Positions 1 to 50,741 of a stretch of DNA of 64,000 nucleotides are shown one piece after another. Under the pieces are notes generated by a model. That model was not told where the DNA came from. It did no database searches and was given only the letters and a program-made list of their open reading frames with translations. Within the stretch, counting starts at the first letter, position 1; each line of letters starts with the position of its first letter. The position numbers and the translations under genes were made by a program. This DNA is from Octopus sinensis (Eukaryota): contig NC_042998.1 in NCBI RefSeq assembly GCF_006345805.1, positions 134,416,001 through 134,480,000 of the forward strand, read 5' to 3'.

Positions 1-564
1 TTCTTCACCTAGTGCCTGTCTGGAAGTAATTTTTGTAGTTTGAATTCCTCCAATTTTTTCACTGTCATCGTAGAATATGGCAAGATATTCAGAATCTTTA
101 ACGTCAATCCCAGATAACCTGATTGAACATTGTGTACTCACAGTACGAATTCGTTTATTACGCATCTGAATAAAACATTGGATACGAAGTTGTTCACTTA
201 CTGCAGCAGAGGGATAATACAGCCATTGAATTAATGACGCAGTGCAGTCGTTAAAGTGGTGATATCTTCATTAGCGACTTCCTTCGCTAAAATGATGACT
301 ATGAAATTTAGGGATGAGGAAATAGGGAAGATCCTTATTAGTTTGTATTTTCTCACCAGATACTATTGAATGAAAACACAGTTGACCGCGGTAGGATTTG
401 AAATCGTTAAATATGAGGCTTAGATATTGGTAATATGAAATATTTTGAATGGAACTTATATCCTGGTCTTGTTCAACTAATCTGTCATGTAGACAGGTTC
501 TGTGTTATAGACATATTGCAATTCTTCATTTCTCCTCCTGAAAAAAACTATTCAGGCTTGCATG

Positions 565-885
565 GTTAGTTCAATTGTATACGAAACCGAGGTCAGCTCT
601 TTTCTGCCAAATAAGAAACTGAAAGGAAAAATGTATCGGACAATGTGGAAAAGAAAAAGATACGCCGACCATCAGTCTTTTTTCTGACACGTAGGCAAGA
701 AGACAGACACTAGGCTAGCTAGCTACATCGGTATATTGAAGGCCAAAAATACCCACCACACAGCATCGAGTGGAACATCGGTGAGAGATCTACGCCACAC
801 ATTAATGGGTCAAGGAAGTACAGGCTTTGTAAAACTGAAAGAACACACATCCTTTTAAAGTCTAAGAACTCCACCGACCTGGTCT
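565..885 (+). mobile_element. Penelope-like element remnant (GIY-YIG endonuclease C-terminal region), frameshifted
   Basis: Hand translation across frameshifts gives SIVYETEV...KMY/IGQC, KRYADHQSFF, TRLASYIGILK and IEWNIGERSTPHINGSRKYRLCKTERTHILL. This matches the PLE pattern VIY..YIG..RY.NH..SF..LS.YIW.LK..I.W.I....PY..GS..C.LC..EK..IL. Confidence 0.6.
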
Positions 886-1618
886 TTTATGGCATTTGAC
901 TCAACTCCTTCTTTTAGGTTCAAAATCTCAACTCAACTAAATTTGTCTCTGTAAGTTAATAAATATATGATGTGTTTGGATTTATTCCATTGACTAACAT
1001 TCTCTTTACAAGAAAAAATCTCAGCTTACACCCATTCAAAAGTAATTGTTGGGTGTATATGTGTTAGAAAGATCGAAAGGTTTATTTTAAATAATGTGTT
1101 AGAAAGATCGAATAAACAGTTTATTTAAAAGCTAGGAAAAAATCCACACCTCACTCAATTCCCAACAACATTGTAAATATTATCACAAGTGCATACGTTG
1201 ACATATCGATTGCTTCAACAAGTAGAAAAGTTATCAGTAAAAATCCCTGCCTCGTGTCCGAAGTGTCAAGCTAAATAAATTTACAATTGCAAAGCTGATT
1301 AGGGATATTATTGCATAAAAACAAACATGGCTTAATTCTTAAAATCCTCTAAATTCAGAGCTCAGATGATTTAAGTGATTATAGTAGCTAAAGGTTGAAA
1401 AGTTTGTTTATAATATCGTTATCGCAGTGAGTTGTTTCTAATTAATGACGGGGTGACACAAGGGGAGATTCTGTTTTGATACTTAGCTTCAGATTAGAGG
1501 CTCAAATATTTAGTCACAATCCATATCGGATCTATATTGAAAACTAAGTGTTTCTGTATCTCAGATTGAGATACGTATATCACTTGTTAAAGTTCTATTA
1601 TAAGACCCTTGGAAAAAT

Positions 1619-2990
1619 ATGTTCCTGTTCCCTTTGGACTCCCTCCACGTAACGAATGGGAATAGTGGATCCCTCACTTCTTCCCTGAAACAGCAATTCG
1701 AGTTGTTCGAATCTACCTCAACAACTGTTCATCTCAGGTCAACCCCGAACAATGGTCAACAACGTAACTTAAAGAAGGCTGTTGACGCCCAAATTCAGCG
1801 CATTTGACATTAAATGGGGCTGTTCGCCTTCTTTCCTCTCTTTCCTCTCTGTCCTCTCTCGTCGCGTATACCACAGACTCCCTCAACCAACTGAAGGAGA
1901 AACATCCTCCGTCCACTCCAGGTGATTGTCTACACTGGCCCTACCCATTAAGTTTTCTACAACCCATCTTCACCCCTGACAATGTCAAGAAAGCAATTGC
2001 CTCTTTTCCAGTAGGTTCTGGCGCTGGGATCGATGGCTTACGACCTCAGCATCTCAAGGATGGTATCTCCTTGTCAGCTGGTGATGCTGGACTCGAACTC
2101 TTGGAGAACCTAACACAGTTCATAAACTTGTTCTCGTCCGAGAGTGTTCTTGCTTACATTCGTCCCCTGTTCTTTGGGGCCAAACTATTTGGTCTCACCA
2201 AGCCCAACGGTGACCTCCGCCCCAAAGCAGTTGGTTGTTCTCTGCGACGGCTCACAACAAGAGTGTGCCTGTCCTCAGTTTCAAACTGCCTGACCGAGGA
2301 ATTTTCCCCTGTGCAGCTAGGAATAGGTACTAAGCTAGATTGTGAGGTTGTCACTCATTCCACCAGGGCTTTCACCAACTTGGCCTCTGAGTCCCCAAAG
2401 GTCATCCTCAAACTTAACCTTAAGAATGCTTTTAACTCCATCACTCTCCACGCAGTAAGGGAGAATTCCCCACCATTTTATCATTTCGTTTGGCAAGCCT
2501 ATCAGGAGCCCTCCTTCTTCTCGTTTAGTGACCACCTCATCCCATCTGCCTCTGGAGTCCAACAGGGTGATCCACTTGGTCCTGCCCTATTCGCATTGGC
2601 TATTGATGATGTTACCAAGATGGGAACCGACCTAGATCTAAATGTCTGGCACCTCAATGATGTTTGTTTGGGAGGCCTTCCTGACAAGGTGCTTACAACT
2701 GCTAGGACGATGATCGAGGAACTTGGTCATAGAGGTCTTAGCGTTAACAGCTCCAACTGCAAGCTCTGGCTCCTCAACCACCCAGCTTTGCATGAGCAGA
2801 CTACTAAACTATTTGTTGACTCCCTCCCCTCAATCGCGATTCCTCCTTCATCAGTGAGGTGTTCCCTTGGAGACCCAATTACTGACCTAGCTATCGAATC
2901 CATCTTTAGATCCAAAATGGCTAACCTCGAACTTTTAAAAAACACCTTGAAGTCATTGAGCCCCACCAAGTTTTTTTTATACATTGGAAT
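1619..2990 (+). mobile_element. CRE-clade-like non-LTR retrotransposon reverse transcriptase remnant (defective)
   Basis: ORFs 1619-1807 and 1804-3030 contain FPVGSGAGIDGLRPQHLKD, LTKPNGDLRPKAVG, VQLGIG, LNLKNAFNSI and SGVQQGDPLGPALF. The catalytic YLDD appears as HLND, there is a frameshift near 1805, and the element is truncated before any endonuclease. Confidence 0.75.
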
Positions 2991-4224
2991 TACTTGTCAA
3001 TTCCTAGGCTATTGTATTTTGTTTAAGTGAAATTAATATTAACAGTGGATATTAGCTATGGGCATGAAAGTATGATATAAGAAAGTCTAATCAGAGAATC
3101 TTATTTGTTTTTTGTCATTCTTGACTGAAGATATAGAAGCAACGTCGCCAGCTTTGTATAAATATCCTATAACTCGCTGATTAAGGCGTCAAAGCTTTCT
3201 AACGACTATTGTATCTTTGGACTTAAAATGCACTTGTCCGTAACGGTCTCGTGCTGTAGACAGAAATGTATTTTTTTCATTTCCCATTTAAATTTTTCTG
3301 CGAGGAATTTCTTTTCTGTTGTAATACAGGTTCTGCATAATAGCATTATCAAATGCCTACGGCATCGATAGAATTTATACACGACTTACGGGATATACTT
3401 TTAAGATCAGATATGATCAATATGTACAGACACTCAGGTCGAGTGACGAAGAGAATTCTAACTTTTTCACGTTTAGAAATTAAGGCATGGCTGAAATAAA
3501 AGTGTCTCCATAACCTAGAATATCGTAAGCAGAGCAACCGCATACAATAACGAGACTAGAAACTGCTAATTCAATTATTCTATAGATCTTTGGCCTTCGT
3601 TGTAATACGTATTCTATACAACATCATCATGGTGGGTGTTAAATAAATCTTCGTTTTTACTTATTTATTTCAAAATATTAGTAATTTCAATCACCCTCTG
3701 TCCACCTGTTGACAGCATTTGCCTACTTGAAGTGACTTTGATAAATTGTCTGTATGTATGTGACAAATATGAGTGTCCTGTGTAACATATGTAAACATTA
3801 CTAATCCCTGAATTCCTTTATCTATAGATACTACACTATGGCCTAACTTTGGGGCTCTAATCTATACAACACATTAAACCTAATCACCTAGTTACCCAAC
3901 ATAAATATTTTCTTCTGTACTTTATTGTTGCTTTTTATGGAAAGGATTTAATGCCTGCCTGTAGATACATCACTAACCCTCATCTATTACGCTCTAATCA
4001 ATACAAAATGTTAAGCCTGTTACATTGACATTAAATATTCTTACTCTATACATTACCATCGTTTTTAATGGGAAGTAGGGTTTAAATTAATACCCCCAAG
4101 CTTGCAGCACGCCTCACAGTCACTGGTACGCAATGATTACTGACATATGCTCAAAATCTTTTATTTAGGAGAAAAGAAAAGTAGTGGTGTTCCAGTGTCT
4201 TTCATGGATGTATTTGAACAGAAA

Positions 4225-4256
<32 letters not shown>

Positions 4257-4257
<1 letters not shown>

Positions 4258-4407
4258 GACAGGCTTCTTTCAGTTTCCGTCTATCTAATCCACTCACAAG
4301 GCTTTGGTCGGCCCGAAGCTATAGTAGAAGACATTTGTCCAAGGTGCCACGTAGTAGAACTGACTCAAGAATCATGTGGTTGAGAAGCATGCTCTTTACC
4401 ACACACC
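4257..4407 (-). mobile_element. tRNA-derived SINE family A, 5' half
   Basis: Reverse complement of the head and core of the copy at 21599-22030; it adjoins a (TA)n run. Confidence 0.8.
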
Positions 4408-4740
4408 ATTATATTCCTCATCATAATTTTTAACATATCACAGAACCTTGCAAATGAACGAAAGAAATCAGTTATTGTGAACATAGCAAAAAAAAAAGAT
4501 CTAACTTCTGAGTTTTAGTGACATGGCAACGTTGTGTCAGATTAATTCGTAACTTGCATCACTAACAAAATTTAACTGGAAATACTCAGACGATGAAGAA
4601 ATGGCATTACTAATACTAAAAACTAATATTTCATTACCATTTTTGGCAAGTACGAAAGTAACTTGAGACCTGTTTCGGTCTTAGCGAAGGATACACTTAC
4701 CTGTGTTTGCCGAAGTTGTTATGAAAAAAATCACTATGTA

Positions 4741-6028
4741 CGAGGGACGTTCAATAAGTAATGCCTCTGATCCACTTGCAGTTGTTTGATCTAGCTGAAA
4801 TTTTGCATGTGCAATCATTTATATCTCTATAGTAAGTGGCAAATTACAGCTCTGAACTAATTGTGGTTTCTGATTTACAGGTGTTTGAACCGAGTCAAGT
4901 GTGAAATGGAGCCTGTTGAGTGTCGAGCAGTGATCCGGTTTTTGTATTTGAAAGGACGCACACCACGGGAGACTTTTGATGAAATGAAAGTAACTTATGG
5001 TGATGATGCCCCATCATATGACCTTGTAAAACGCTGGCATCGTGAATTCAAACATGGTCGGAACTCTGTGGAAACAGCTCCCAGATCTGGTCGCCCCTTC
5101 TGCCATTGATGAGGCATCTGTCCGTCAAGTTGAGGCTGCCATTTTGGAAGATCGACGCATAATTATTCGCCAAATAGCCCATTAGGTCAAGATTAGTACC
5201 GGGTCTGTAGAAACTATCATTCATGACCATTTGCATATTCAAAAGGTGTCTGCCAGATGGATTCCCAGGTTGCTCACGCCTTTCCGGAAGCAAGAACGCG
5301 TTGAGTGCTCGAGGGTGAATTTGGAGATGTGCCAAGAAGATGAGTCAAAATTTTTCAAAAGACTGATTACACAGGATGAAACCTGGGTCCATTACGATGA
5401 TCCAGAGACCAAAGACCAGTCAATGCAGTGGAAGCACCGTGACTCACCCCCTCCAAAGAAGGCAAGGGTGCAGCCCTCCGCTGGCAAGGTCATGCTCACA
5501 GTCTTCTGGGACCAGGACGGAGTAGTGATGACAGATTTCCTGGCAAAGGGTACCACAATTGCAGGAGCCTATTATGCTTCACTTTTGAGGAAATTAAGAG
5601 AAGTTATCAAAATCAAGAGGCGGGGCAAGATCAGCAAAGGCATCCTCCTCCTGCAAGACAACGCTCCGGTCCACAACTCGCTTGTCGCCAGATCAGAAGC
5701 ACAGGCGTATGGCTATGAACTCCTCCCCCATCCCCCTACTTTCCTGACCTTGCACCCTCTGATTTTCACCTCTTCCCAGTCATGAAGTTATTTTTGAAAG
5801 GAAAGCGTTTCCCAGATGATGCAGCCTTGATTTCTGAAGTCACGTTCAGGTTGGAGGACCAAGCTGGGGTCTTCTACAAAAACGGTCTCCAGAGCTGCAT
5901 CAAGCAATGGGAGAAATGCGTAACTCTGGGTGGTTCCTATGTAGAAAAAGACTAATAACTGTACCAAGTTTCGTTGCTCTACTGCTATGGGAAGTGGGTC
6001 AGGGGCATTACTTATTGAACGCCCCTCG
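4741..6028 (+). mobile_element. Full-length mariner (DD34D-type) DNA transposon, 1288 bp, defective
   Basis: TIRs CGAGGGACGTTCAATAAGTAATGCC and GGCATTACTTATTGAACGCCCCTCG, with TA duplications at 4739-4740 and 6029-6030. Confidence 0.95.
4906..5955 (+). pseudogene. Mariner transposase pseudogene
   Basis: MEPVECRAVIRFL HTH, WIPRLL, ITQDETWVH, LLQDNAPVH and a frameshifted HPP(YS)PDLAPSDFHLF. Frameshifts lie near 5100 and 5745, with an in-frame stop near 5183. Confidence 0.92.
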
Positions 6029-7289
6029 TAGATAAACAATACTGTAGACAAGTAAGCGAAAAAATGTAGCAATTTTACATTATATCAGTTTGCGTTATGC
6101 ATTTTGGCAAAGCATCCTCCACATGATTCACTTCGGAGAAAATCGGTTCTGATATTTCCTTGTCCAAATGGCATCGCATTAAGCATCAAGTTCTTGACTT
6201 TATTTTCGTTTTGTGTGTATTTTTCTTATCGATAAAATAAATATAAAAACATAACGATCTACCCTTTCTGTCGTTTCTTCACATCCTCTTCAGCTATAAT
6301 ATTGATTTCTAGCATTGACACAAGGCTTTTAGTTTGATGGTATTATAGTATAATTGATTAAATCATTAAATCAACTCAGTATTTGACTAGTAATTTATTT
6401 TATCGATCTCGAAAGAATGAAAGAAGTTGCTATTAGCTGGATTTTAACTTCAACAATCTAACATTTCTGCTAATCCAAGACGTTTAATAATTCAAGGCTC
6501 TCTCTCTCTCTCTCTTTCTCTGACGTTATACTATTGATATCATAACAGTTTAAAATCACTAATATATTTTGTCAACATGGGTGTGATTAAAGACAATGTC
6601 AGTCCCAAACTTATTCAGTGCATAGGTGTATGATTACTACATCTTTTAATGGGGGTTTTTTTTTCAGACTTAAATGACACTCGCACCGCGATCGATTAAT
6701 TGACTACAGTCCTCCCATTCAACTTTGTGGCTTAATACTAAAGTTAAAAATCATAGGTAGAATCGGTGGAGCAATAGATTGAATACATTGCGATATTTTG
6801 CTACGCATTTTCTTGTTCGACTTTGAATCCCACCGAGGTCTACTTTGTCTCTCATCTTCAAGTAATTGCTTTTAACAAAGGCACAGAGCCCGGAATTTGG
6901 AGAAAGGGTTTGCCGATTAATTCGATCCCAATATTTGACCTACCCTATGCAAAGCTAACTTTGATGGAACTTGAACTCAGAGCAAATAGTGCAAAACGTT
7001 TTGACCGACGTTTTAATGACTCTGCCAGTCCTCAGGTGCCAGTAATCTTAATCTCAATAAACACCCTTTGAGCAAGTTCTCAAACCCATAATTGTTTCTA
7101 ACATTGGCACAACTTTAGCGAGAGGGTATAGTCAATTAGATAACCCCTAGCCCTAACCCTAATTGAAACATCTATCACTCAAAACTGTTGGCATTGAGGT
7201 TAAATTTGAAGCTATGATCATAAAGGCGGCTAGCTGGCAAGCATTATTAGAGCGTCAGACAGTATGCCTCGGGGAATTTCAGCCAAACC

Positions 7290-7835
7290 TTTATGCACTG
7301 AGTTCTAATCGTGTCAGAGTCAACCTTGACTTTCCTCCCTCCGGAGTCTATAAAATAAAAGTTCCAGTCAAGTACTAGAGTCAATTTAATCAACTAATCC
7401 CTCCTTTCAAAATTGCTGGTCTTGTGCCTAAATTAAAAACTGTTACAAGTGGCGAACCGTCAAAATCGTTAGAGCGTTGGAATAGATTCCTTGTAGCTTT
7501 CCATCCAGTTTAAATTCCTTGCAGCATTACTTCCGATTCTTTACACTCAGAGTTCATCATCATGGGTTGATAAAATAAAATAACAGCCAAGTACTGGAAT
7601 CGATGGTATCGATTAACCCCTGGGTGATTAATTTGCGGAATTGTTTAAGCGTCGGACGAAAATTTGCTTTGTGATGTTTGTCCCCGCTCTTTTATGTGCT
7701 GAGTTCAACTCACGTCTAAGTTAACTTTGCCTTTCATCATTTGCAGGTCGATAAAGTAAAATACCAGTCAAATACCGCAGTCGATGTAATCGACTAACCT
7801 CCTCTCACAAATGTTAGGCCTTGTACCTCTATCAG
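7290..7835 (+). mobile_element. Cluster of about three degenerate SINE family B copies
   Basis: Repeated gagttc(a/t)a B-box-like, (g)gtcgataaa..aaata.cagt and gtcgatgtaatcgact segments, homologous to 41210-41350 and 57345-57565. Confidence 0.6.
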
Positions 7836-7841
7836 AAATAA

Positions 7842-8035
7842 TAATAATTATTATTGTTATTGTTATTGTTATTGTTATTGTTATTGTTATTGTTATTATT
7901 ATTATTGTTATTATTATTATTATTATTGTTGTTGTTGTTGTTGTTGTTGTTATTGTTATTGTTATTGTTATTATTATTATTGTTATTATTATTATTATTA
8001 TTATTAATTATTATTATTATTATTATTATTTATTA

Positions 8036-8066
<31 letters not shown>

Positions 8067-8074
8067 TATTATTA

Positions 8075-8109
<35 letters not shown>

Positions 8110-8162
8110 ATTATTATTATATTATTATTATTATTATTATTATATTATTATTATTATTATTA

Positions 8163-8205
<43 letters not shown>

Positions 8206-8300
8206 ATTATTATTATTATTATTATATTATTATTATTATTATTATTATTAATATTATTATTATTATTATTATTTATTATTATTATTATTATTAATTATTG

Positions 8301-8365
<65 letters not shown>

Positions 8366-8373
8366 TATTATTA
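7842..8373. repeat. (ATT)n/(GTT)n trinucleotide microsatellite
   Basis: Visible tandem ATT with GTT and ATC variants. Confidence 0.97.
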
Positions 8374-8954
<581 letters not shown>

Positions 8955-9692
8955 TGCATGCTATTTTTATTTCACCGCGCATCAGTCCTAAGCGAGTAAC
9001 TTATGATCAAATATATTCTACCCATGACCATCTCGTCTTTTTCCTGTCCAGGAAACCCAAGAATAGATTGTTCCACGTGTCCTTTCTTTAAGATAGCAAG
9101 GTGTATATTTGAGGGAGGTTTGGCTACCATTTCGAAAACATAATTATTAGCGAGGTCAGTGAAAAGCAAAATTGGTAGAACGTCGGACAAATTGCCTAAC
9201 AATATGTAGTAACTGATGATTTTTTACATTCTGAGTTTGCAATAATCATTATGAACTCAATAGGATAAGGTCTTATTCAAGTAATGGGGTTGGGACCAGA
9301 TAAAATCGATGTAATCGACTGTGCCGCCAAAGAAGGGTTGATTACATGCTTTTTTGATCAGCTATTTCTGAAAAGTTTCGTTGGGAAGAAATAAAGAGTA
9401 CCCCTGTAAAAGAATGTTTTCTTAGAGAAGATATAAACTTAAATATAGATGAAGAGAAAATAGGATTCGGTATTATAACATTCATATCTATTCAAACTGA
9501 AACGATTTTTTCAAGGAGCCAAAACTGACTCAACTCGTAAAGAATTTACTGCTACAATAATGGCATACGTCAACATCATGCAACGTCCACAAAGTTAAAT
9601 GACTAGTTTCTATTATTTCTCGAAGTCTAAATGACCAGGAATAGCAGTTTTTTTTTTTGATGCCTTAATTTTGTTAAAAACTGTAATCTTAC

Positions 9693-10929
9693 CTGAATCG
9701 ATCAGACATTCCAAGACCTCTAGAATCTTATCGGAGTTGGGTTGATGAACAAGCGGAATGGAAGTGAGCAACATCTTAAATGTTTCTTTCTTCAGACTAT
9801 TCCTTTGTGATCTTTCGATCACATAAACATTGATAATTTTGCAAAGTTCATTCACCATCGACGGATCTGCTGCAAAGGAACTTGTAACAATTCCATACAT
9901 TACATCTGGATTTATGAGGGATATTTCGCCTGAGGATAACCGATTAAAAAGTGGACTAATCACTTTTTTCAAAACTGCTTGTCTTTGCTGGGGTTCACAG
10001 GAAATTATTTCAGGCAAAATTGTTAGAATATTATCTACAGAAAAGAAATCATTTTCAAATGTTTCTGGGGGTAGTTCTTCCAACATGGTAGCCATCACAA
10101 TAGTACTACGCTTGATACGTCCAGGTTCGTTTTCTTCGGAATTAACATATTTAGTGTCTCTAATTAAATCGCAGTCACGAACTATGTGTGGTTTTCCTGA
10201 TTGATCGTCATTTTTCTTCAAATTCTCGAAATCTCCCTTTTCAACAAAGCTGTTCTCCATTCCAAGGCGCATCAGTGACAGTATCAGCTCAGACAAGCAG
10301 TTTTTTTGGACCCCTTTCTCTTTGGCACATGCTATAACTTTAATTATCCAAGCTATGGGTAATTCATACAACTGTTCAACAACGCCACTGTCATATACAT
10401 CGATCAGTTTCTTCCGATTGGGGTTGCTGAACCTTGTCGGAGGTGTAGACCAACATCTCGCCAGTGCATCCGTGCATTTATCAACCAAACCTATTTCTTC
10501 GGCCATTTCCCTGACGTTGCAACAGTTCTGCAAAAGCTTAATGATAGTGTCAGCAGACCGACTAATCTTTGAAGACATTACCATATTTTCAATAAATTTT
10601 TCAGTCATTTCGATTAAATTATCTGTACCCATCATCTCCAAGTAAGCTGCTGCCAGTCGAAGTTCAACCACATTATCGACGATCAAACTTATATTGATTC
10701 CATAACAAAAATCTGCAATAAGACCAAATACATCTGAACCACCCGGGAAGTCTTTCAGTTCTAAACTTAGAACGTTTCCAATAATTCCTTCAGACAATTC
10801 TCTCACACGCTTGCAAATGTAATCGGACTTGGTTAGCAAAGGAAATCTGTGAAGTTTAAATTCTGTGTTACCAACCCAGATGGTAATATCTGAGAACTCT
10901 CCATTTTCCCGGAATTTGGCGTAACTCAT
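9693..10929 (-). CDS. BTB/POZ-domain protein, NPH3/RPT2-like; large first coding exon (about 412 codons)
   Basis: Intact 438-aa ORF with SDITIWVGNTEFKLHRFPLLTKS, LKDFPGGSDVFGLIADFCYG and NVVELRLAAAYLEM. A strong donor CAG|GTAAGA at 9693/9692 (phase 1) means the last ~26 aa of the ORF are probably intronic. Candidate acceptors lie just upstream of the ATG (about 10940-10947). Confidence 0.88.
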
Positions 10930-10988: not shown

Positions 10989-11172
10989 TTGTATGTATGT
11001 ATGTAAGTATGTATGTATGTATGTATGTATGTATGTATGTATGTATGTATGTATGTATGTATGTATGTATGTATGTATGTATGTATGTATGTATGTATGT
11101 ATGTATGTATGTATTTAGTATGTATGTATGTATGTATGTAGTATGTATGTATGTATGTATGTATGTATGTAT
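10989..11172. repeat. (TATG)n microsatellite
   Basis: Visible tandem repeat. Confidence 0.97.
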
Positions 11173-12180
11173 GCACAAAATGGTTATATTCCTTGCTTTG
11201 TCTTCCTCTTACTAAGTTTCGCTATGACTGTTTTGTATTTACTGACAACAAAAGTGTATTAACTTGAATTGAAGGTAAATAATATTCATGCATCTATACA
11301 GCAATCATTTGTAGTATGATTCATAGTCTTTATATGCGAATTTATAATTATATTTACATGTACACATGCCTATAAATTATGCACACACATGTATATATAT
11401 ACTACTGCACAAATGTGTGTTTACACACGCTTATGTTGCTCTTGTAAAAATATATGTATATGTGTGTGTTTACAAACAACTGTGTGTGCATGTACGTGTG
11501 AGAATAAACAAAAAAAGTGTGTGCTGTGTATGACTGTATATGTGTGTGGGTTTGTGTGAATATGTTTCTTTGAAAAACTTAAATTTGTGTCTAAAATGTT
11601 ACACCGAAGAAACGATTTCCTGCACGTACGTATCAGTGAACGTACGTAATGAGTTAGAAACACTATATCACTCGCTGAATGAACAGGTCAATCCCAGAAT
11701 GCAATTCTCTTCTGTTGCTCATGCTATTTGTTTTTGTTTTTGTTTTTGTTTTTGCTGTCATTGAAACAAAATATTTTCCACTCATGAAAAATTCTCTTCG
11801 ATATTTATTATTAGTTTTTTTTTGTTGTTGTTGCTTATTCTAAAGTTATAAGACTGCTGATTGATTAATATATTGATTGATTGATTTAGTGATTCAGTAT
11901 TCTAAAGTGTCGTCTGGTTTTGCGACAAGAGTCTGCCTTTCTCAGCATTTATTTATCTCTTTCTCCTTTTTCTCTTATATTACGCGCACACAAGCACACA
12001 CATGTATTATTTTGTATGTGTGTGTGTGTGTGTGTGTGTATGTGTGTGTGAGTGTCTGCGTGCGTGCACGTGCATGTTTTTGTATGTATACATTCAGTCG
12101 CGCGTGCGCACACACATATGTATAAATAGCTATATATACACATACATTTTTATGTACGTATATGCGCGTGTGTATAATTT

Positions 12181-19912: not shown

Positions 19913-22811
<2,899 letters not shown>

Positions 22812-22814
22812 CGG

Positions 22815-23010
22815 GAAGCTTTATGAAAATAGACAAAAGACGAAGGCAGGTTTACGGAAATAAACAAAAGACGAAGGCAGGTGGATTACAAACAAACAAT
22901 TGTATTAGTATGGCGCTCAAGAAATATAAATAAAACAAGTCTTTAACGTTTCGAGCCTACGCTCTTCAACAGAAAGATACACAGAGAAGAAACACAGAAA
23001 GAAGGAGAGA
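22815..23010 (-). mobile_element. Short hammerhead-bearing repeat, copy 2
   Basis: The minus strand reads tcttt CTGTTGA AGAGC GTAG GCTC GAAAC GTT aaaga (22948-22972), followed by ttgagcgcc as in the other copies. Confidence 0.7.
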
Positions 23011-23239
23011 AAAAATATGCGTGCAGAGGCTAGCGAATCAACATGGCGATCTGATTTCGGCCAGAAGTCAAAGATCAGACGTGAGACGCAAGAGCAAAAT
23101 TAGGGGAGATAATAGGGTTAAATGACCTCGCTCCAACATAAGAGTGTGTGTGTGTATGAGAGAGTATTAGTGCGTATGAGAGGTCTGGACGTGTGTATGT
23201 ATATATGATGTGATGTGTAAAGTCGTATGGTGTAGTGTA

Positions 23240-23680
23240 GAGAGAGGAGATGAGGGAAGAGGGGGAGGTAAGGGGGAGGGGAGAAAGAAAGGGGAGAAGA
23301 GGAGGGGGAAGGGGAGAAGGAAGGAGAGGAGAAGAGGAGGGGGAAGGGGAGAAGGAAGGAGAGGAGAAGAGGAGGGGAGAGGATAAGAGGAGGGGAGAGG
23401 ATAAGAGGAGGGGAGAGGATAAGAGGAGGGGAGAGAAGGGAGAGAAGGAAGGAGAGGAGAAGAGGAGGGGAGAGAAGGGAGAGAAGGAAGGAGAGGAGAA
23501 GAGGAGGGGAGAGAAGGGAGAGAAGGAAGGAGAGGAGAAGAGGAGGGGGAAGGGGAGAAGGAAGGAGAGGAGAAGAGGAGGGGAGAGAAGGGAGAGAAGG
23601 AAGGAGAGGAGAAGAGGAGGGGAGAGGATAAGAGGAGGGGGAGAGAGGGGTTAGATGAGGAGAGGGGGAGAGTTGAGACC
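23240..23680. repeat. Polypurine GA-rich minisatellite
   Basis: Degenerate ~30-40-bp units such as GAGAAGGAAGGAGAGGAGAAGAGGAGGGG; almost purely purine on the + strand. Confidence 0.9.
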
Positions 23681-23777
23681 AAATGGCGTATAAGAACGAA
23701 GAGAGAAGATTATAGTACGTTTAAATATTTGTTGTGCAAGATTTTTTTATGTGAAGTCGTGTGTTAAAACAGATATT

Positions 23778-24015
23778 GTTATATTTCGGAATGGTCATTT
23801 TGCCAGTTTAGCCAATAAAAACACACGCACTATATAAGAAAGAAGAAAACAAAAGACCACTGATGCGGTCACAGGAGTGTGACGAAAGAACTCTGGCCGA
23901 AATAAGATTAAGATTAATGTAAAAAATAAATAACACTGAAGCAAAGTAACACCAAATATATAGTGTGTGTGTTTTTATTGGCTAAACTGGCAAAATGACC
24001 ATTCCGAAATATAAC
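23778..24015. repeat. 59-bp near-perfect inverted repeat (23778-23836 and 23957-24015) with a 120-nt spacer
   Basis: 58/59 identity on direct comparison. Confidence 0.95.
23855..23898 (+). ncRNA. Degenerate minimal type I hammerhead ribozyme motif
   Basis: gacca CTGATGC G GTCACA-GGAG-TGTGAC GAAA G AA CTC tggcc: 6-bp stem II, CCA/TGG stem I, and A9 changed to C. Confidence 0.55.
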
Positions 24016-24026
24016 TATATATATAT

Positions 24027-24069
<43 letters not shown>

Positions 24070-24176
24070 TATAGATATATATATAGATATATATATAGCG
24101 AGAGAGAGACAGAGAGACAGAGACAGACAGACAGACTGACAGGCAGGCAGGCAGGCAGACAGACAGACAGACAGAC

Positions 24177-24270
<94 letters not shown>

Positions 24271-24291
24271 GATAGATAGATAGATAGATAG

Positions 24292-24327
<36 letters not shown>
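24016..24327. repeat. Compound (TA)n/(GACA)n/(GATA)n microsatellite
   Basis: Visible tandem repeats. Confidence 0.95.
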
Positions 24328-24328
<1 letters not shown>

Positions 24329-24829
24329 TTACGGGTAGTTTCATTGGAAGAAACGAGAAAAAAAGAGGTTATAGGGAAATGGAAGTATAGAGAGAGTGAA
24401 GGTGAGACGAAGAAGAAGGAAAGGAAGAAACCAAATATTTATAGCAGAAAGAAAATCATGGTAAAAAAACTGTCTTCTGGTTTGACGGTAAATTCTTTGT
24501 TGAAAGTTGTTGGGTGACAATTGCTAAGCTGGTAAGTCGAACAAACACTTCCGCGCATGCGTAATACAATAAGGATGTTCTCAACTGTTATATGGGAATG
24601 TAAATATGTTTGCAAATTGTTTTTGTTACATGTTATTCTGTGTTCTGAATACTTTCATTTTAACAAATGTTGCTTACTGCAAGTTATGGATGATTCTTTT
24701 ATGACTTCATTGCTTTCAGGCTTAGCTTAATGTATTTTCGCGCCCGACATCACAAAATGTGTCTGAATAAACATTGTCTGACAGCAAATAGAGACTCGGA
24801 CATTGCTTAGAAAATATTTTTCATTTTTA

Positions 24830-24909
24830 ACCTCGTATATTGTACGCACGAGGGATTTTGACCTTTAAATTATGGGGGGAAAATGCGGATTATACTCGAG
24901 GATTTACGG
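24830..24909. mobile_element. pogo/Tigger-type terminal fragment
   Basis: Ends in GCGGATTATACTCGAGGATTTACGG|TA. Confidence 0.55.
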
Positions 24910-25039
24910 TAGTCTGTGTTAAACAGCGGTAAATCTTCAACTGGATGAATCCTGGCTGTGTAGATAAAGATAGTAATTAGTATTTGATGTTATTATGTAT
25001 TCACCTAGTAGAGAGTGAATACTGGCATACACATACATA

Positions 25040-34530: not shown

Positions 34531-34740
34531 CCGGTCCAGGAAACGAAACCACATTCTTACGCTCATGAATTCAACGCTCTAACAACAAAGCTCACGTGCC
34601 TCCACATACGTTGATATATTTAGCCATTATCTATATTATGTAGAGTGAGACAACATAGGAAGGTTTTCTCTCTGTGTGTTTGCATTTGTCATTTTGTTCG
34701 TATAAACTTTTAATACTCTCTTTGTATTTGTATATTCTAG

Positions 34741-35531
34741 GTAACCATAATGAAGACCGGCAAAAAATTGCCATAATTACTGGAGGAACAGGTGGCATAG
34801 GTTTTGCAACTTCCAAAGCTCTTGCTTCTCAAGGTTATAATTTAATTCTTGGTTATCTTTCTGACAGTGAAAATGCCAAGAAATGCTTACAGGAATTGGA
34901 GACAGATTTCAACATCGAAGTTCGGACGATTAGCGGAGATGTTTGTGAAGAAGGCACTGTGAATTCGTATTTTAGCTGCTTGAATGAAATGAACGGCAAG
35001 CTCACTGCTATTGTTCACACTGCTGGACTTTTTAAACCAAATTCTTTTTCGAAGGACCCGAATACTTGTTTTAGTACTTTTGAATACTACGACTACTACC
35101 AAGATATCTATCCTAAGTGTTTCATACGTTTAGTAGAAACGGGAATGAAGTTTATGGAAGATGGTCATGGCTATATAGTCTGCTTGTCAAGCCCTGGTTG
35201 TAATATCAATGACCATGTTCGACTAGGTTATATGATGCCAGGTACAGGGAAATGTGTACTTGAGTATCTGTCTCGTCATTATGCTAAAATGTTAGCAAAG
35301 AGGGGAATCTCTTGTAATTGCATTGTTCCTGGATACATACAAACGAAACCTTGGAAACTGAGAGAAAGCATTTTGGGTCCTGATGTTGGTTGCCAGAGAA
35401 CACCGATGGGTCGATGGGGTCAACCTGAAGAAATAGGAGATTTTATTTCATATTTATGTTCTCCTAAAGCAAGTTTTCTCACCGGTGCTACCATTCCTTT
35501 TGATGGAGGTTTGAGTCTTGGGAAGCAGTGA
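34741..35531 (+). CDS. Short-chain dehydrogenase/reductase, FabL-like enoyl reductase type; main exon
   Basis: Acceptor TTGTATATTCTAG| at 34740, then TGGTGGIG, SGDV, HTAG, SSPG, YMMPGTGK, NCIVPGYIQT, RTPMGRWGQPEEI and GATIPFDGG. The frame is intact to the stop at 35529-35531, with AATAAA at 35649 and 35704. Confidence 0.92.
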
Positions 35532-45330: not shown

Positions 45331-47027
45331 CGACGATGACAGCGATGAATTCAGCCCACACATGACAACTTCTATCATCATTCGAATCTGCCAGAACATC
45401 AGCACATTTCATTTAAGGTATTCGTAACCACTTTGAATGGGTGTGTTTGCAACCACCGAACGTGTCCGATTTGACATTAGTTCTTCAGGATTAATCTCTT
45501 TTCGACTTTTGTCTACATCAGCTTGTATAACATTTAAGAAATCGATTATTGTTGATTTCTATGCTGATTTAAAGGTCAAAAAATCCGAAAGTTTGTATTG
45601 TGTCCTTCCTTAGCTTATCTATAGTGTGCTCATTTGCGGGTTTCGAGCTATCACGTGATTAAAAATAGCAAGAGTGATTTTTTAAAAATTTAAGGTATCT
45701 AATATATACGACCCTATGAGAGCACAGATCTCTGTACTAGCGAATGATCCCATTCTTACGTTAAATGAACCAGCCGAAGAAAACAACTTGGCTCAGACTG
45801 CGTCCTGATCAAAAAGCAAAGTTTTCTGGCATGCATTATAATTTTTATTCGGCTATCACGTATGCTGTTTTAAATTTTCACAAAATTTAGTACCTCTTTT
45901 TAATGATTGTTTAGAGATCGATTAATAAAATATTTCCAATGTCAAACTGAATAAATCTAGCATTTCTTTTATTTGTAATACTAGTATCAAACCAACACAC
46001 TTTTCCATTGGAAAATGTTGATAGCTACTTTTATCTCATAAATTTTAGAATATTCTTGCGAGCGAGACAAATCTCAGACTTAGCTGGCCTTATTAACTTA
46101 TATTTAGGGTTTAAAAAAACAAGGTTCATCTTATGATTCTTGATGGTGATAAAGTCGTTACTTTTTTATGGTGCCTGTTCTGTCATTAATTTCCATCCTT
46201 ACTGCTATGTTTTTTTGTTTCTATAATTGTCATTATAAGCTATGAGCTGGCTCACAGATAATTTTGCGTAAGCCCTTTTCCAACTCATAACTGTATCTAG
46301 TTTTATTCGTAGAGTAGTAGGTCTTTTTTGGATTGTTTTAAAAAGTTTTAATGCCAGTCGTTAGCATATTTTAAAAGAGATTAAAGAATTTAACACTCGC
46401 TATCAAATCCAGAATATCCGATCGGAGTTTTTTTATGGTTTTTATTGTTTATTAGTATCTTCTTGACTATAAATGATCGTACACTGATACGCAGAATCAT
46501 CAGCGTATACTTACTATCTCTTACGCTCAACGATGCCCACTATATACTCAAACAGCCTTTGTGCATATTATTCATTCGATAGTGTTGGTATGTATTTTTC
46601 TCGAGTTGTTAAGGTTTAACAAATTCTTTATCAAAATACTATATGGAGAACGTTCTTCCGTGTAACTTGTATTTAAATATTTCAAGTTGTGGACAAAGCT
46701 TCTTAGATTACGATATGCAGAGTGTAATATGGGAGTAGAGTAAGTGATTGTGGTGTGAACGATGAAAGAGGACAACAGAAAAAAGGAGAATGGAAATATA
46801 ATCAGGCCTTACCTCGGCGAAGATTAGTCTACCGAAAACTCAGCGAAGTTTAGATCTCTCTCAGCCAGCTCGATACGTCTTGTGCTTTCTTCGTCTCAGC
46901 TGCAACTGCTCCCTCGTCGATGCCACACGTGCCTCGTCGCTCGCCGCTTCCGCTTCCTACCGCGCATGCGCCCTGCAAGCCCTACTTCCGCCCTCCCCTT
47001 TCTGTCATCCTCTCCACCGACACCACA

Positions 47028-47040
47028 CGCCCCCCCCCCT
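47028..47040 (-). promoter_or_regulatory. Polypurine tract of the LTR element
   Basis: Minus-strand AGGGGGGGGGGCG immediately before the 3' LTR. Confidence 0.88.
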
Positions 47041-49997
47041 GATCTACAGATCACTGAACCAGCTTTCTCACTCGCTCCGCGCTTCCAAACTCGCACCTTA
47101 ACTGGTTTCATAATCAGCCAACCAGGGAGGAGGGTGCCGTTTCCTCTGTGGTCGCAGTGCGACCCTAGGACTTGTTCTGGTATGTTGCTGCTGGCCTCAT
47201 CATCCTGTCTACTGGTGTTGTTTTCATCTTGCCCACTGCTGCTGGTCTCATCCTCTGAGGCATGGACAATCCTCCGTATATCCAAAACGTGGCGTGGCAT
47301 ACCATCGACCGAGATGTTATTCTTTGAATTTACAGAGGTTATTGTCCTCTTTCTCCATTATGATGTACACCGTGCGTTTGGGGGTTTTACCCAGACTTCC
47401 TCCCCGACCTGCACGAAGGCGTGCTCTTCCTCTGCTCCGGGTCGCATTGATGTAGTACACGGATGCCTCCACTCGTACCTGAATATTGCCCTGTGTGGCA
47501 CCGACTCCTCAGCCTGTCCTAATCTGGGCGACATATTGTACCAAAACACGGCCTCGATTGGTGAAATGTGACCCCTCTCTGCCATGGCCTTGATGGTACG
47601 ATGATGCCTTTCCACCACCCCATTTCCACTTGGCCGGTATGCCGCCCTGAAGAAGCGGTTGACCTTCCACTCATCAAGCATTTCTTTCAGCACATCCGAG
47701 CGAAATGCAGTGCCATTGTCCAGAAGCAGTTCATCCACGGGGCCTCGTTCCAGGAATATCTCATTCAACACTTTCACAATTTCTTCTGCAGTCCCCGTCT
47801 TCATCTCCCTCCATATGGCCAACCGCCCCGGTCCGCAGTCAACCATTGAGAGGTATGTCCCCTGCCGGTAGTGTGTTATGTCCACCGCCAGTCGTTTCCA
47901 GTCCTGGTCCACTGGAATACTTCCCGCTTCATGTACGACCGGAGCAGGGTCGATGGACTGGCACCTGTCACAACTGCTAACCACTCTCTGCACGCTCTGT
48001 CTTGTTGCGTCGGAGTCAACTTTTCTGGCTAGGAACAATGTCCTGTCCACACCCATGTGATGCATGGTGTGCAGTCTCCGCAACTCCGAGTCGCTCAGAC
48101 GGCATACTGCAGCTACAGCCTGCTTCGCATCCTCTGGCACCTGCAACCAGGCTCGCTTTACCCTGGTCAGGACGTCTGCCCTGTTCTTCTTGGAAGGCAC
48201 AAAGATCACGCTCAGCTTCAGATTGAACTCAGTGGTTAGTTCACGCAGTATTCCCAATCGGCGCTTTACCAGCATCTCTGCTGCCCCTTTGGTCCGCACC
48301 CTCCGCTCATCGGTGATGACTGCTGTCGCCCAACCAAGTACAGTGGCCGAATCAGTCCTGATTTCTATGGTGTGCAACCCCCACTTCAAGGCTAGGTTCA
48401 CCCCCTTCAACACGGCATCCAACTCCGCCACGTTGATATGATTGCAGTCATCCGTCTTCCTGAGCCAGGCTGCATCTTCCACCATGACACCTCCCACTTC
48501 TAAGACAACCCCTATTGCGATGCTACTGGCGTCACACCATACGATCCCGCTCTTTGATTTGGGAACATACCAGCTGCCCCTCACTGGGTCCTCTGCTCCT
48601 ACTCTGACCAAGACTTCCTGCATCATGTCGATCGTCCTCTCCCCCACTCTATCATTCCACTTCACTCCTTCGGCTCGTCTCTTGATGAAGCTACATGCTG
48701 TTCGGAGCCAACCTGCAATCAGGTAATGTCCCACCAGCTTCCCATACACAGAGAACAGTTCCCGTCTACTTAAGCTGGCGCCCAGTTCAGGGACCTCATT
48801 CCCTCGCCGGAACACCAACGCGCCGGCCTTGTCTCTCTATAGCTTGAGGCCCAGTGCAGCACCTCCCGCCATTGCCTCTGGCGGCTTGGCGATCAGTCCA
48901 AAACTCTTCAGGTGGCCTGTGACCTCCGTTGCTGGTATCACGGTTTCATCCACCAAATGTCATCGATGTACGAATTGGTGGCCCTTTTTACCCTGTCCAC
49001 CTTCCCCAGGATGGCCTTGAGAATTGTTGCCATAATCTTTGGCGCTGAATTCAGCCCGAATCCCAACCTGGTCAGACAGTACGTCCGGCCCTTACACCTG
49101 ACGAGCTGGTACTTCCATAATTTCTCAGCCACATGCACCTGTAGGTATGCCGACTTCAAATCAACAATCGTGGAGGCCCCCGTCATCTGCCTCCACTCTC
49201 GCAAGCTGTCTCCGCAGACAGCCGTGGCCTCGCCGCCTGTATGACACGACACGTGGTCATTCAGCTCTCGGAAGTCAAGCACTGGCCTGACCTTATGCTT
49301 TGTGGGCTGTATCACCGCCATCAGTGGCAGGACTCCGCTCTCTTCTTTTTTTCCAAGGGATCAATATGCCCTCCTTAATCCACCGTTCCACCTCCCCCTC
49401 GAACTCACTTCTGGCATCTCCTTTTAGAGTATGCTGATAGCAGCCCACTTTATTCTTTAACATCGGGGGCTCTCCCTTCCAGTGCCACTCCACTGTCCAC
49501 CTCTTGCCATCAAAGACAGCCCGAAAATCCTGGTCTTCAATGGTGTGCGCAGCATCCTTTTCCTCACGGTTGTCGCCGGTGCATGGTCTCGCCCTACACG
49601 GTTTCCCCGCTAACCCAAACGTTACACCAGTCTCGTTAACGGTGACACCTCCCAAGTGGGTGATTACATCCATCCCCATCACCACGTCAATCTCGTCCAC
49701 CAAGTGACCAACCACAATCGCTCGCAACGTCAGCTATAGTCCCTGCACTGCAATCTGCGCATCTGTAACCCCTCCGCAGTGTACTTCTCTTCCGTCGACA
49801 GCCCTAACACTGCTTCCTCCACTCCACGTCTCTGCCACTTCTGTAGTCATCAGGGTCGTTGTACAGCCCGTGTCCACAAGGGCTCGCGACATCTTCCCCT
49901 CCACCAGAATGTCGACCACAGGTAGCGATGATAAGCGCGCCTCTACTAATCCAAAGGGACGACTAATGGCGCAGTAGTCTCCCGCAGTCCGTTTCCC
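47040..49997 (-). pseudogene. pol: pol (protease, RT, RNase H, integrase), interrupted
   Basis: Motifs ALVDTG, VDLKSAY, GFGLNSAP, YIDDI, WCDAS/AELDA/IRTDS, HHCC zinc finger and LAVD/LLDNG/VVER. Lesions are TAG at 49734, frameshifts near 49345 and 48955, TAG near 48840 and TAA at 47358. Confidence 0.93.
49937..49997 (-). promoter_or_regulatory. Predicted -1 ribosomal frameshift signal (G GGA AAC plus H-type pseudoknot)
   Basis: The heptamer is in gag phase, followed by a 7-nt spacer, stem 1 GGGAGACUA/UAGUC(G)UCCC and stem 2 GCGCC/GGCGC. The -1 frame leads into the protease. Confidence 0.8.
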
Positions 49998-50698
49998 CGC
50001 AGACACTCGCTGGCTATATGCCCCGGCTCTCGACACCGGTAGCAAATCACCTCAGGCTTGGGTGACACGCAGTCACGCACCATGTGTGGACCTTGGCACC
50101 GGAAACACTGTCCTTTAAACGGTCGCACATGTTCTTTCTTTAGCCCCTCTCCGCTGCTCCTAGCTGGGCCACTTTTCGACGTTGCAGTCGCTGCTACCGA
50201 CGTCATCCTGCTGCACGAAACTAGTACGCGCGCCCGACATATGATGTCCGCCATCGGCATCGAATGCACATTCGGAAGCTTCTGTAGCTCGACCGACATG
50301 TCGGGAAAGCCAGTCACGAACGCCCACCTAACCGTCCGGTCCAGCGAATCTCCCTCGTAACCCGCCAGTCTAGCCAGTCTTCTAAGTTCATTGGCAAACA
50401 CGTCCACCTGTTGCCCAGTCCATCTCATTCTAACCAGGCGAGCGTATGCCTCGAACATTCCCTCCGCAAAGGCCTCCATCAATCGGATTTCTACTTTCTC
50501 CGCGCTGAGTTGGTCCGTCTCCTCCATCTCTAAATACAACGCCAACGCCGGGCCATCCAAGTACAGCGGCATGAAGCTCGCCAGGTCACCTATACCATGG
50601 AGCTTCGCCACCAACTTCACTTTCTTCAACCAAGCGACCACATCTGTGTCGCCGCAAAACGGTGTTATAAGTTCGTGCGAAACCCGAGCTCTCTGCAT
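49946..50698 (-). CDS. gag: gag of the LTR retrotransposon (250 aa, intact)
   Basis: Open frame with two C-terminal zinc knuckles, CFRCQGPHMVRDC and CYRCREPGHIASEC. Confidence 0.9.
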   Translation of the reverse strand: MQRARVSHELITPFCGDTDVVAWLKKVKLVAKLHGIGDLASFMPLYLDGPALALYLEMEETDQLSAEKVEIRLMEAFAEGMFEAYARLVRMRWTGQQVDVFANELRRLARLAGYEGDSLDRTVRWAFVTGFPDMSVELQKLPNVHSMPMADIICRARVLVSCSRMTSVAATATSKSGPARSSGEGLKKEHVRPFKGQCFRCQGPHMVRDCVSPKPEVICYRCREPGHIASECLRGNGLRETTAPLVVPLD

Positions 50699-50729
50699 TA
50701 TTTTTATTTATAAAACCGATTGTTTATAT

Positions 50730-50741
50730 GCCGAAATAGCT
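50730..50741 (-). promoter_or_regulatory. Atypical primer-binding site complementary to tRNA-Phe nt 1-12
   Basis: Element-sense AGCTATTTCGGC abuts the 5' LTR. Its complement GCCGAAATAGCT is the 5' end of the human/Drosophila-type cytosolic tRNA-Phe(GAA), recalled from memory. Confidence 0.75.

Follow-up and report, generated by a model that had tools for sequence, protein, structure and literature searches.

Positions 10929 to 9693 (minus strand) of the 64,000-nt octopus stretch analysed here (contig NC_042998.1, 134,416,001 to 134,480,000; hereafter the window) constitute coding exon 1, out of three, of a genuine nuclear gene of Octopus vulgaris, which is BTB-NPH3-like. Its product combines a BTB domain of the subtype found in plant NRL proteins with a helical region that profile comparison marks as a homologue of the NPH3 domain of plants. 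Members of the family occur well beyond octopus, in Porifera, Cnidaria and Spiralia, and the distance tree makes the animal clade a sister of the plant NRL family, not a group nested inside it. For identity, homology and an ancient animal-wide distribution taken jointly, we estimate a probability of about 0.8; the identity and homology of the octopus protein by themselves are very probable. The NPH3 domain has been described as plant-specific (PMC1257465), and recent papers treat it as plant-specific and absent from metazoans (PMC11313873; PMC1257465). An animal clade that is well supported, conserved and intron-bearing contradicts this label.

Gene model and protein architecture

Coding exon 1 is 1237 nt long (9693..10929, minus strand) and runs from the ATG at 10929 to the last exon base at 9693, thus supplying aa 1-411 and the first base of codon 412. 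An initial annotation of this DNA had picked out exactly this interval as part of an NPH3-like BTB gene with an intact and spliced frame. All six peptide strings that it quoted (LHRFPLLTKS, DFPGGSDVFGLIADFCYG, NVVELRLAAAYLEM, NLIEMTEKFI, AEEIGLVDKCTDALA and QLYELPIAWIIKVI) are present in the translation of the minus-strand open reading frame (ORF) 9613..10929, which is unbroken over 438 codons, and the splice donor that it implied at 9693 is real. The last exon base is followed by a consensus donor, TCGATTCAG/GTAAGATTAC (CAG/GTAAGA), the 5' splice site GTAAG occupying 9688..9692 in phase 1, and the raw ORF runs 27 codons past codon 411 into the intron to a stop at 9613. At its other end, the N-terminus MSYAKFRENGEFSD lines up with the N-termini across the whole animal clade.

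A search of 5.8 billion proteins retrieved the complete product, a 602-aa protein (P0001) that carries the automatic NCBI name "phototropism 2-like [Octopus vulgaris]" and is 100% identical over exon 1. When P0001 was compared with the window by tblastn, its aa 1-412 matched at 100% identity, and the search with the full protein did not find exons 2 and 3 in the window. Window positions 1-20929 are identical (100%) to positions 20929-1 of the O. vulgaris chromosome OX597815.1 segment L001, in which exon 2 (267 nt, L001 21711-21977) and exon 3 (305 nt, L001 24486-24790) lie about 0.8 kb and 3.6 kb past window position 1. The same gene is also present in O. sinensis CM016860.1. The three-exon model, with canonical GT-AG borders and polypyrimidine tracts, reproduces P0001 exactly. 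Its introns measure 10.5 kb and 2.5 kb; the window holds the first 9.7 kb of the 10,473 nt of intron 1 (1..9692, minus strand), with transposon debris inside.

The protein consists of four parts: an NRL-subtype BTB domain, an NPH3-like domain (aa ~125-456), a long helix (aa ~449-484) and an acidic disordered tail. The BTB/POZ domain (aa 5-113; 10591..10917, minus strand) has the NRL-type signature LHRFPL..KS, FPGG and FCYG and scores 35.0 bits against Pfam PF00651 in the raw ORF and 34.4 bits in the full protein, the cutoff being 20.5. The signature (LHKFPLxSKS, PGG, FCYG, AAxYLEM) is invariant among the cephalopod, sponge and plant NPY5 sequences and near-invariant over the 76 members of the animal clade described below; the columns invariant with plant NPY5 are L26, H27, F29, P30, L31, S35, P62, G63, F74, C75, Y76 and G77. 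The best solved-structure matches of the BTB core are the BTB-zinc-finger factors ZBTB8A, ZBTB48 and BCL6, but the octopus protein lacks their zinc fingers and DNA-binding domain. The octopus-family profile also matches the BTB-BACK-Kelch chains of KLHL3, KLHL26, KLHL22, KBTBD2 and KBTBD4 (1e-7 to 1e-12). The similarity of the octopus sequence to BTB chains in the PDB stops at about aa 115. Unlike in the BTB-BACK-Kelch proteins, what follows is NPH3-like, with no BACK domain and no Kelch propeller. A likeness to them is that the predicted structure has helices right after the BTB, at aa 126-161, where the 3-box would lie.

The NPH3-like all-helical domain occupies 9693..10557 (minus strand; aa 125-411) in the window and, in exon 2, extends to about aa 456. 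While the BTB match is clear, the full protein scores 27.4 bits against Pfam PF03000 (NPH3), for which the gathering cutoff is 27; the orthologues score 26.8 (Argonauta), 29.1 and 34.8, and a sponge member 24.0. Because the NPH3 score is marginal, we compared profiles of the post-BTB region alone, with the BTB removed, built from 59 animal-clade and 60 plant sequences. This hhalign comparison gave a probability of 99.7% and E = 8.8e-26 over 293 aligned columns. The match spans query columns 4-335, which correspond to octopus aa 125-456, from the first post-BTB helix to the end of the NPH3 domain. The best-conserved stretch is the C-terminal block, NSDKILEVLECLIDSEQGMPKEERTSLIKSVDWSAFSEEALEKSLDKSIIPSKYIARAA in octopus, aligned to its counterpart in plant NPH3, and the animal motif IDxxxLSxxALxxAxxxxxIP matches the plant motif MDCxKLSxEAxxHAxQNERLP. 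In a phmmer search of the same protein collection, plant NPY5 was the best plant match and the best non-animal match altogether (E = 1e-12, ~31% identity). Together with the profile comparison, this puts the resemblance well outside what chance would give. The proposal of an NPH3-like BTB family in an animal is hence borne out by a significant BTB match, the full-length PF03000 score and, decisively, the profile-profile alignment.

An AlphaFold2 (AF2) model computed from a 10-sequence alignment predicts the BTB region and an all-alpha domain with a predicted local distance difference test (pLDDT) score of 70-95 (80-95 for aa 271-400), disordered loops at aa 163-177 and 228-270, and a disordered tail at aa 481-602. 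Between domain and tail there is a single long helix (aa 449-484, pLDDT ~66-84), a candidate for the C-terminal coiled coil of the NRL family; long stretches of repeats or coiled coil are seen in the sponge paralogues. Sequence searches of the PDB with plant NPY5 or with the animal profile found no structure of an NPH3 domain. As no NPH3 domain has been solved and Foldseek was uninformative, the predicted fold is neutral for the homology call: the structural check yielded the all-alpha post-BTB domain and no informative match.

The acidic tail ends in a conserved aromatic motif. The octopus C-terminus reads ...SFKPYNYYVKPY, and its motif YSFKPYNYYVKPY has counterparts in TYFPYSHRY of Haliotis, KKYPRY of Owenia and, near its end, SYWPFND of the octocoral protein. 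The cephalopod, gastropod and annelid tails that we inspected end in ...RY, ...RF or ...PY, and NYTFRALNFD is common to the cephalopod members.

The plant NRLs (NPH3, RPT2, NPY/MAB4, NRL5) have the same order of parts as the octopus protein, with a signature BTB, a helical NPH3 domain, a helix or coiled coil and a disordered tail, and the NPH3 domains of octopus and plant can be aligned end to end. However, identity is only ~17-31%, the WW..ED motif is lost, and a 40-residue insert, predicted to be disordered (aa 228-270), is added. The acidic octopus tail with its aromatic Y/F-P-Y-type end also differs from the R-x-x-S-x-x C-terminus of the plant proteins, and the octopus protein falls in a separate clade.

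There is good evidence that this is a functional gene, as the initial annotation had held probable, and that its intron is old: the ORF is intact, the protein and an intron position are conserved, and an orthologue is transcribed and spliced. Between O. vulgaris and O. sinensis, 4 of the 1809 coding sites differ and the protein is identical, whereas intron 1 shows ~1-4.7% divergence and indels. The low coding divergence relative to the intron is suggestive of constraint, in a comparison of low power. Over the full length, identity is 77% to the Argonauta orthologue and 45-48% to two decapodiform-type orthologues. One of the latter (P0004) is found complete with untranslated regions on ~2.2-kb contigs from five sequencing runs. 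These contigs must be spliced transcripts, since intron 1 is longer than 10 kb in octopus and close-relative genomic copies (L008). The L008 donor, CAAGCAG/GTAAGT, interrupts the same codon in the same phase as octopus intron 1, so that a decapodiform cephalopod shares both the position and the phase, and a transcript (L003) reads across the same junction (GCAG/AATAT). Furthermore, at least 11 proteins predicted from other lineages break off at the same junction with -G-x, as is typical when the reading frame runs on into a G/GT intron.

Distribution and descent of the family

Word-indexed homologue searches with family profiles returned the same 8 proteins only, and the family was revealed by an exhaustive HMMER search. 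The profile was made from six cephalopod and sponge sequences and matched 1438 representative clusters (50% identity) with E < 1e-3, of which 127 have E < 1e-30. Names were sought for the best 150 of the 1438 matches, most of them without a taxon, and 30 clusters were named. All of these are animals except Selaginella, which falls on the plant side. They comprise molluscs (Haliotis, Physella, Argonauta, Octopus), a nemertean (Tubulanus), an annelid (Owenia), a rotifer (Adineta), a bryozoan (Bugula), flatworms (Paragonimus, Heterobilharzia, Cichlidogyrus, Macrostomum), an octocoral (Dendronephthya) and two homoscleromorph sponges (Corticium, Oscarella). No deuterostome or ecdysozoan is among the 30 named clusters, which speaks for the best 150 matches and not for a general absence. 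This gap among the named clusters would explain why the family has been overlooked.

A neighbour-joining (NJ) tree, unrooted and distance-based, was built from the 140 listed sequences of at least 330 aa (157 were retrieved). The tree divides in two: Striga NPY5 and Selaginella fall in a plant clade, and at least 76 representatives make up a non-plant clade. In the latter, BTB is detected in 73 of 76 members and NPH3 in 40 of 76 (E ≤ 0.01, best 2.2e-18), while BACK appears in a single one (E = 0.0012). On a 62-taxon subsample with capped distances, the bipartition between animals and plants was recovered in 100 of 100 NJ bootstraps, on a long internal branch; mean distances were 1.74 within animals, 1.07 within plants and 2.29 between them. 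The octopus protein lies outside every sampled plant NRL subgroup, and the animal sequences form a clade of their own. The phylogenetic comparison thus gave no grouping inside the plant NRLs and a separate animal clade, in an unrooted tree whose named taxa are animals or plants only.

Within this clade the homoscleromorph sponge Corticium candelabrum has at least six paralogues (P0006, P0010, P0012, P0029, P0162, P0166; LOC 134178085-134178847) on one 9.05-Mb scaffold, a cluster that suggests a lineage-specific tandem expansion, and some of the Corticium paralogues have long coiled-coil repeats (LSTTRDELSKCQRN). A non-plant subclade from metagenome contigs (P0079, P0083, P0089, P0100, P0124, P0149, P0150) carries tandem copies of NLI.(M/V)A(G/A)DILK after the first NPH3 helices, in proteins rich in N, I and K.

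Several points weigh against our reading of the gene and its family. The full-protein NPH3 score lies right at its threshold, with the Argonauta and sponge members under it, and exon 1 by itself, at 16.2 bits, falls short of the cutoff of 27. The AF2 model is of moderate quality (mean pLDDT 66), and a Foldseek search of the PDB gave nothing but alpha-solenoids, some designed and some natural, with template-modelling (TM) scores below 0.25, none of them an informative neighbour. Transcripts come from the decapodiform orthologue and not from the octopus gene itself, and the unrooted distance tree is the sole phylogeny. Plant NPH3 and RPT2 bear a C-terminal 14-3-3 phospho-serine at the antepenultimate residue, and the corresponding R-x-x-S-x-x end is absent from the octopus protein and from the cephalopod, gastropod and annelid members inspected. 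As this phosphosite pattern is missing, regulation must differ from that in plants.

The borderline Pfam score and the generic alpha-solenoids returned by Foldseek could also be read as those of an ordinary animal BTB protein, of the BTB-BACK or BTB-zinc-finger type, whose likeness to NPH3 resides in the BTB only or in a chance resemblance of helical composition. However, the profile alignment made without the BTB extends over the full NPH3 domain at 99.7%, the Pfam search of P0001 found no BACK (PF07707) or Kelch at E ≤ 0.1 and detected no zinc-finger domain, and BACK is matched, weakly, by one clade member against 40 for NPH3. We reject this explanation as extremely improbable; the grouping with BTB-BACK proteins that the initial annotation had named as its counter-case did not appear. 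A similarly slim chance attaches to a recent lateral gain of the gene by octopus from a plant or alga, or to plant or algal contamination of the assembly. Automatic names such as 'phototropism 2-like' and 'At1g30440-like' do reveal plant proteins as the best named matches. Yet the gene is found in two Octopus assemblies (215 Mb and 208 Mb), both chromosome-scale and independent of each other, amid animal-type repeats, its spliceosomal introns are long (10.5 kb and 2.5 kb), its exon GC content of 0.386 and third-position GC (GC3) of 0.374 equal the window mean of 0.375, its best plant match is only ~31% identical, and orthologues exist in at least seven animal phyla. On the chromosomal placement, the introns, the base composition and the orthologues this possibility was rejected. 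Indeed, the spread over Porifera, Cnidaria and Spiralia makes any recent lateral transfer untenable and suggests an origin no later than the base of the animals. More serious, although we consider it unlikely, is a single ancient transfer, from the green lineage to the animal stem or the reverse, before sponges diverged. All 30 of the named clusters are animals or land plants, with no fungus, choanoflagellate or other protist among them, and under vertical descent so scattered an occurrence would call for many losses. However, these names stem from the best 150 of 1438 matches, so that absence elsewhere does not follow, and several metagenome-derived subclades could be protists; moreover, the two clades are reciprocally separate, with full bootstrap recovery and a long internal branch, and the animal genes have an old intron in common.

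Of the two origins proposed in the initial annotation, ancient retention or lateral transfer, an ancient origin therefore holds and a recent transfer does not, while the data fit both retention and one very old transfer. We read the animal clade itself as old and vertically inherited, and for its source we lean slightly to vertical descent from an early eukaryote, with many losses. A tentative scenario, to which we would give a little less than even odds, is that NPH3 is an ancient eukaryotic module that was fused to BTB before the split of animals and green plants. Sponges, cnidarians and spiralians would have retained it, and model animals would apparently have lost it. The animal proteins would still have its ancestral, light-independent role (e.g. 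in cortical polarity, trafficking or CUL3-dependent turnover), which would have been wired to phototropins and auxin transport later, in plants.

Possible function and significance

In plants, NRLs serve as BTB scaffolds of the plasma membrane: NPH3 works together with CUL3 on phototropin 1, and the NPY proteins work with AGCVIII kinases on the polarity of PIN (PMC11313873; PMC1257465). For NRL5 and others, GTPase activity and binding to Rabs and to VAMP721/722 have been reported (PMC11313873). By analogy, the octopus protein may act as a BTB-dimer scaffold or a CUL3 substrate adaptor, its BTB domain dimerising and perhaps docking CUL3 while the NPH3-like domain and tail would bring in partners or substrates; membranes, or trafficking and polarity, are the probable setting. 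We favour such a role because the BTB, the post-BTB helices and a whole NPH3-like domain have been kept. The octopus BTB appears to retain residues in common with CUL3-binding BTBs, and the adaptor logic is plausibly the same as in the KLHL/KBTBD substrate adaptors of CUL3. In the octopus BTB, L45-S46-E47 (M-S-D in the sponge members and Haliotis) is a tentative candidate for the CUL3-contact phi-x-E motif. The CUL3-adaptor mechanism specifically is doubtful, at perhaps one chance in three, and it counts against it that CUL3 binding, dimerisation, membrane association and GTPase activity would all be carried over by analogy with plant NRLs. Less likely still, the protein would work mainly through its NPH3-like domain as a nucleotide-hydrolysing trafficking factor, like the GTPase reported for Arabidopsis NRL5 along with six further NRLs, rather than as a CUL3 adaptor. 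The reported GTPase activity and the Rab and VAMP721/722 binding of NPH3 domains (PMC11313873) are in its favour, as is the conservation of the domain helices in animals. On the other hand, the activity rests on one study, the paper defines no GTP-binding residues that could be checked in the sequence (PMC11313873), and the predicted fold is all-alpha with no P-loop-like element.

No evidence ties the octopus protein to light: it lacks the C-terminal regulatory motif of the plant proteins, and phototropins are not known outside green plants. The adaptor mechanism considered above cannot run via phototropins or auxin-transport kinases, neither of which is known from animals.

The raw similarity to NPH3 is already in databases: precomputed Pfam hits exist, and annotation pipelines have assigned names such as "At5g48800-like", "At3g08660", "NPY"-like and "phototropism 2-like". 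Literature searches on metazoa, invertebrates, horizontal gene transfer and molluscs, one of them poorly constrained, found no paper on NPH3-domain proteins in animals. For plant biology, the animal proteins provide an outgroup with which the core activity of the domain can be separated from the phototropin and auxin add-ons; for animal biology, they are an unstudied family of putative BTB adaptors. Their sequence diversity would also aid structure prediction and crystallisation of the NPH3 domain.

Neighbouring sequence

A long (TATG)n microsatellite (10990..11174) begins ~60 nt ahead of the start codon, within the promoter or the 5' untranslated region. Intron 1 contains a run of (ATT/ATA)n microsatellite at 8783-8999, a fragment of a reverse transcriptase of the long interspersed nuclear element (LINE) type in the plus-strand ORF 1804-3030, and a fragment of a mariner-type transposase in the plus-strand ORF 5231-5785.

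Elsewhere in the window, positions 34674-35531 (plus strand) hold an intact 285-aa ORF for a short-chain dehydrogenase/reductase (SDR; adh_short_C2, 128 bits). The O. sinensis annotation has a 309-aa SDR gene on the opposite strand that spans the entire BTB-NPH3-like gene, and hence the latter may be nested in an SDR intron. A remnant of a long terminal repeat (LTR) retrotransposon at 46882-50804 (minus strand) stands out sharply in the composition profile by its GC content of 0.46-0.55, against 0.37 for the window. Its pol ORF (47358-48818) encodes RNase H, an integrase core and DUF7047, and its gag-like ORF (49946-50698) has a CCHC zinc knuckle. Finally, positions 20000-25000 form a purine-rich repeat block in which the GC skew reaches +0.5 around 22-24 kb and which contains a GA-rich ORF artefact at 23167-23682.
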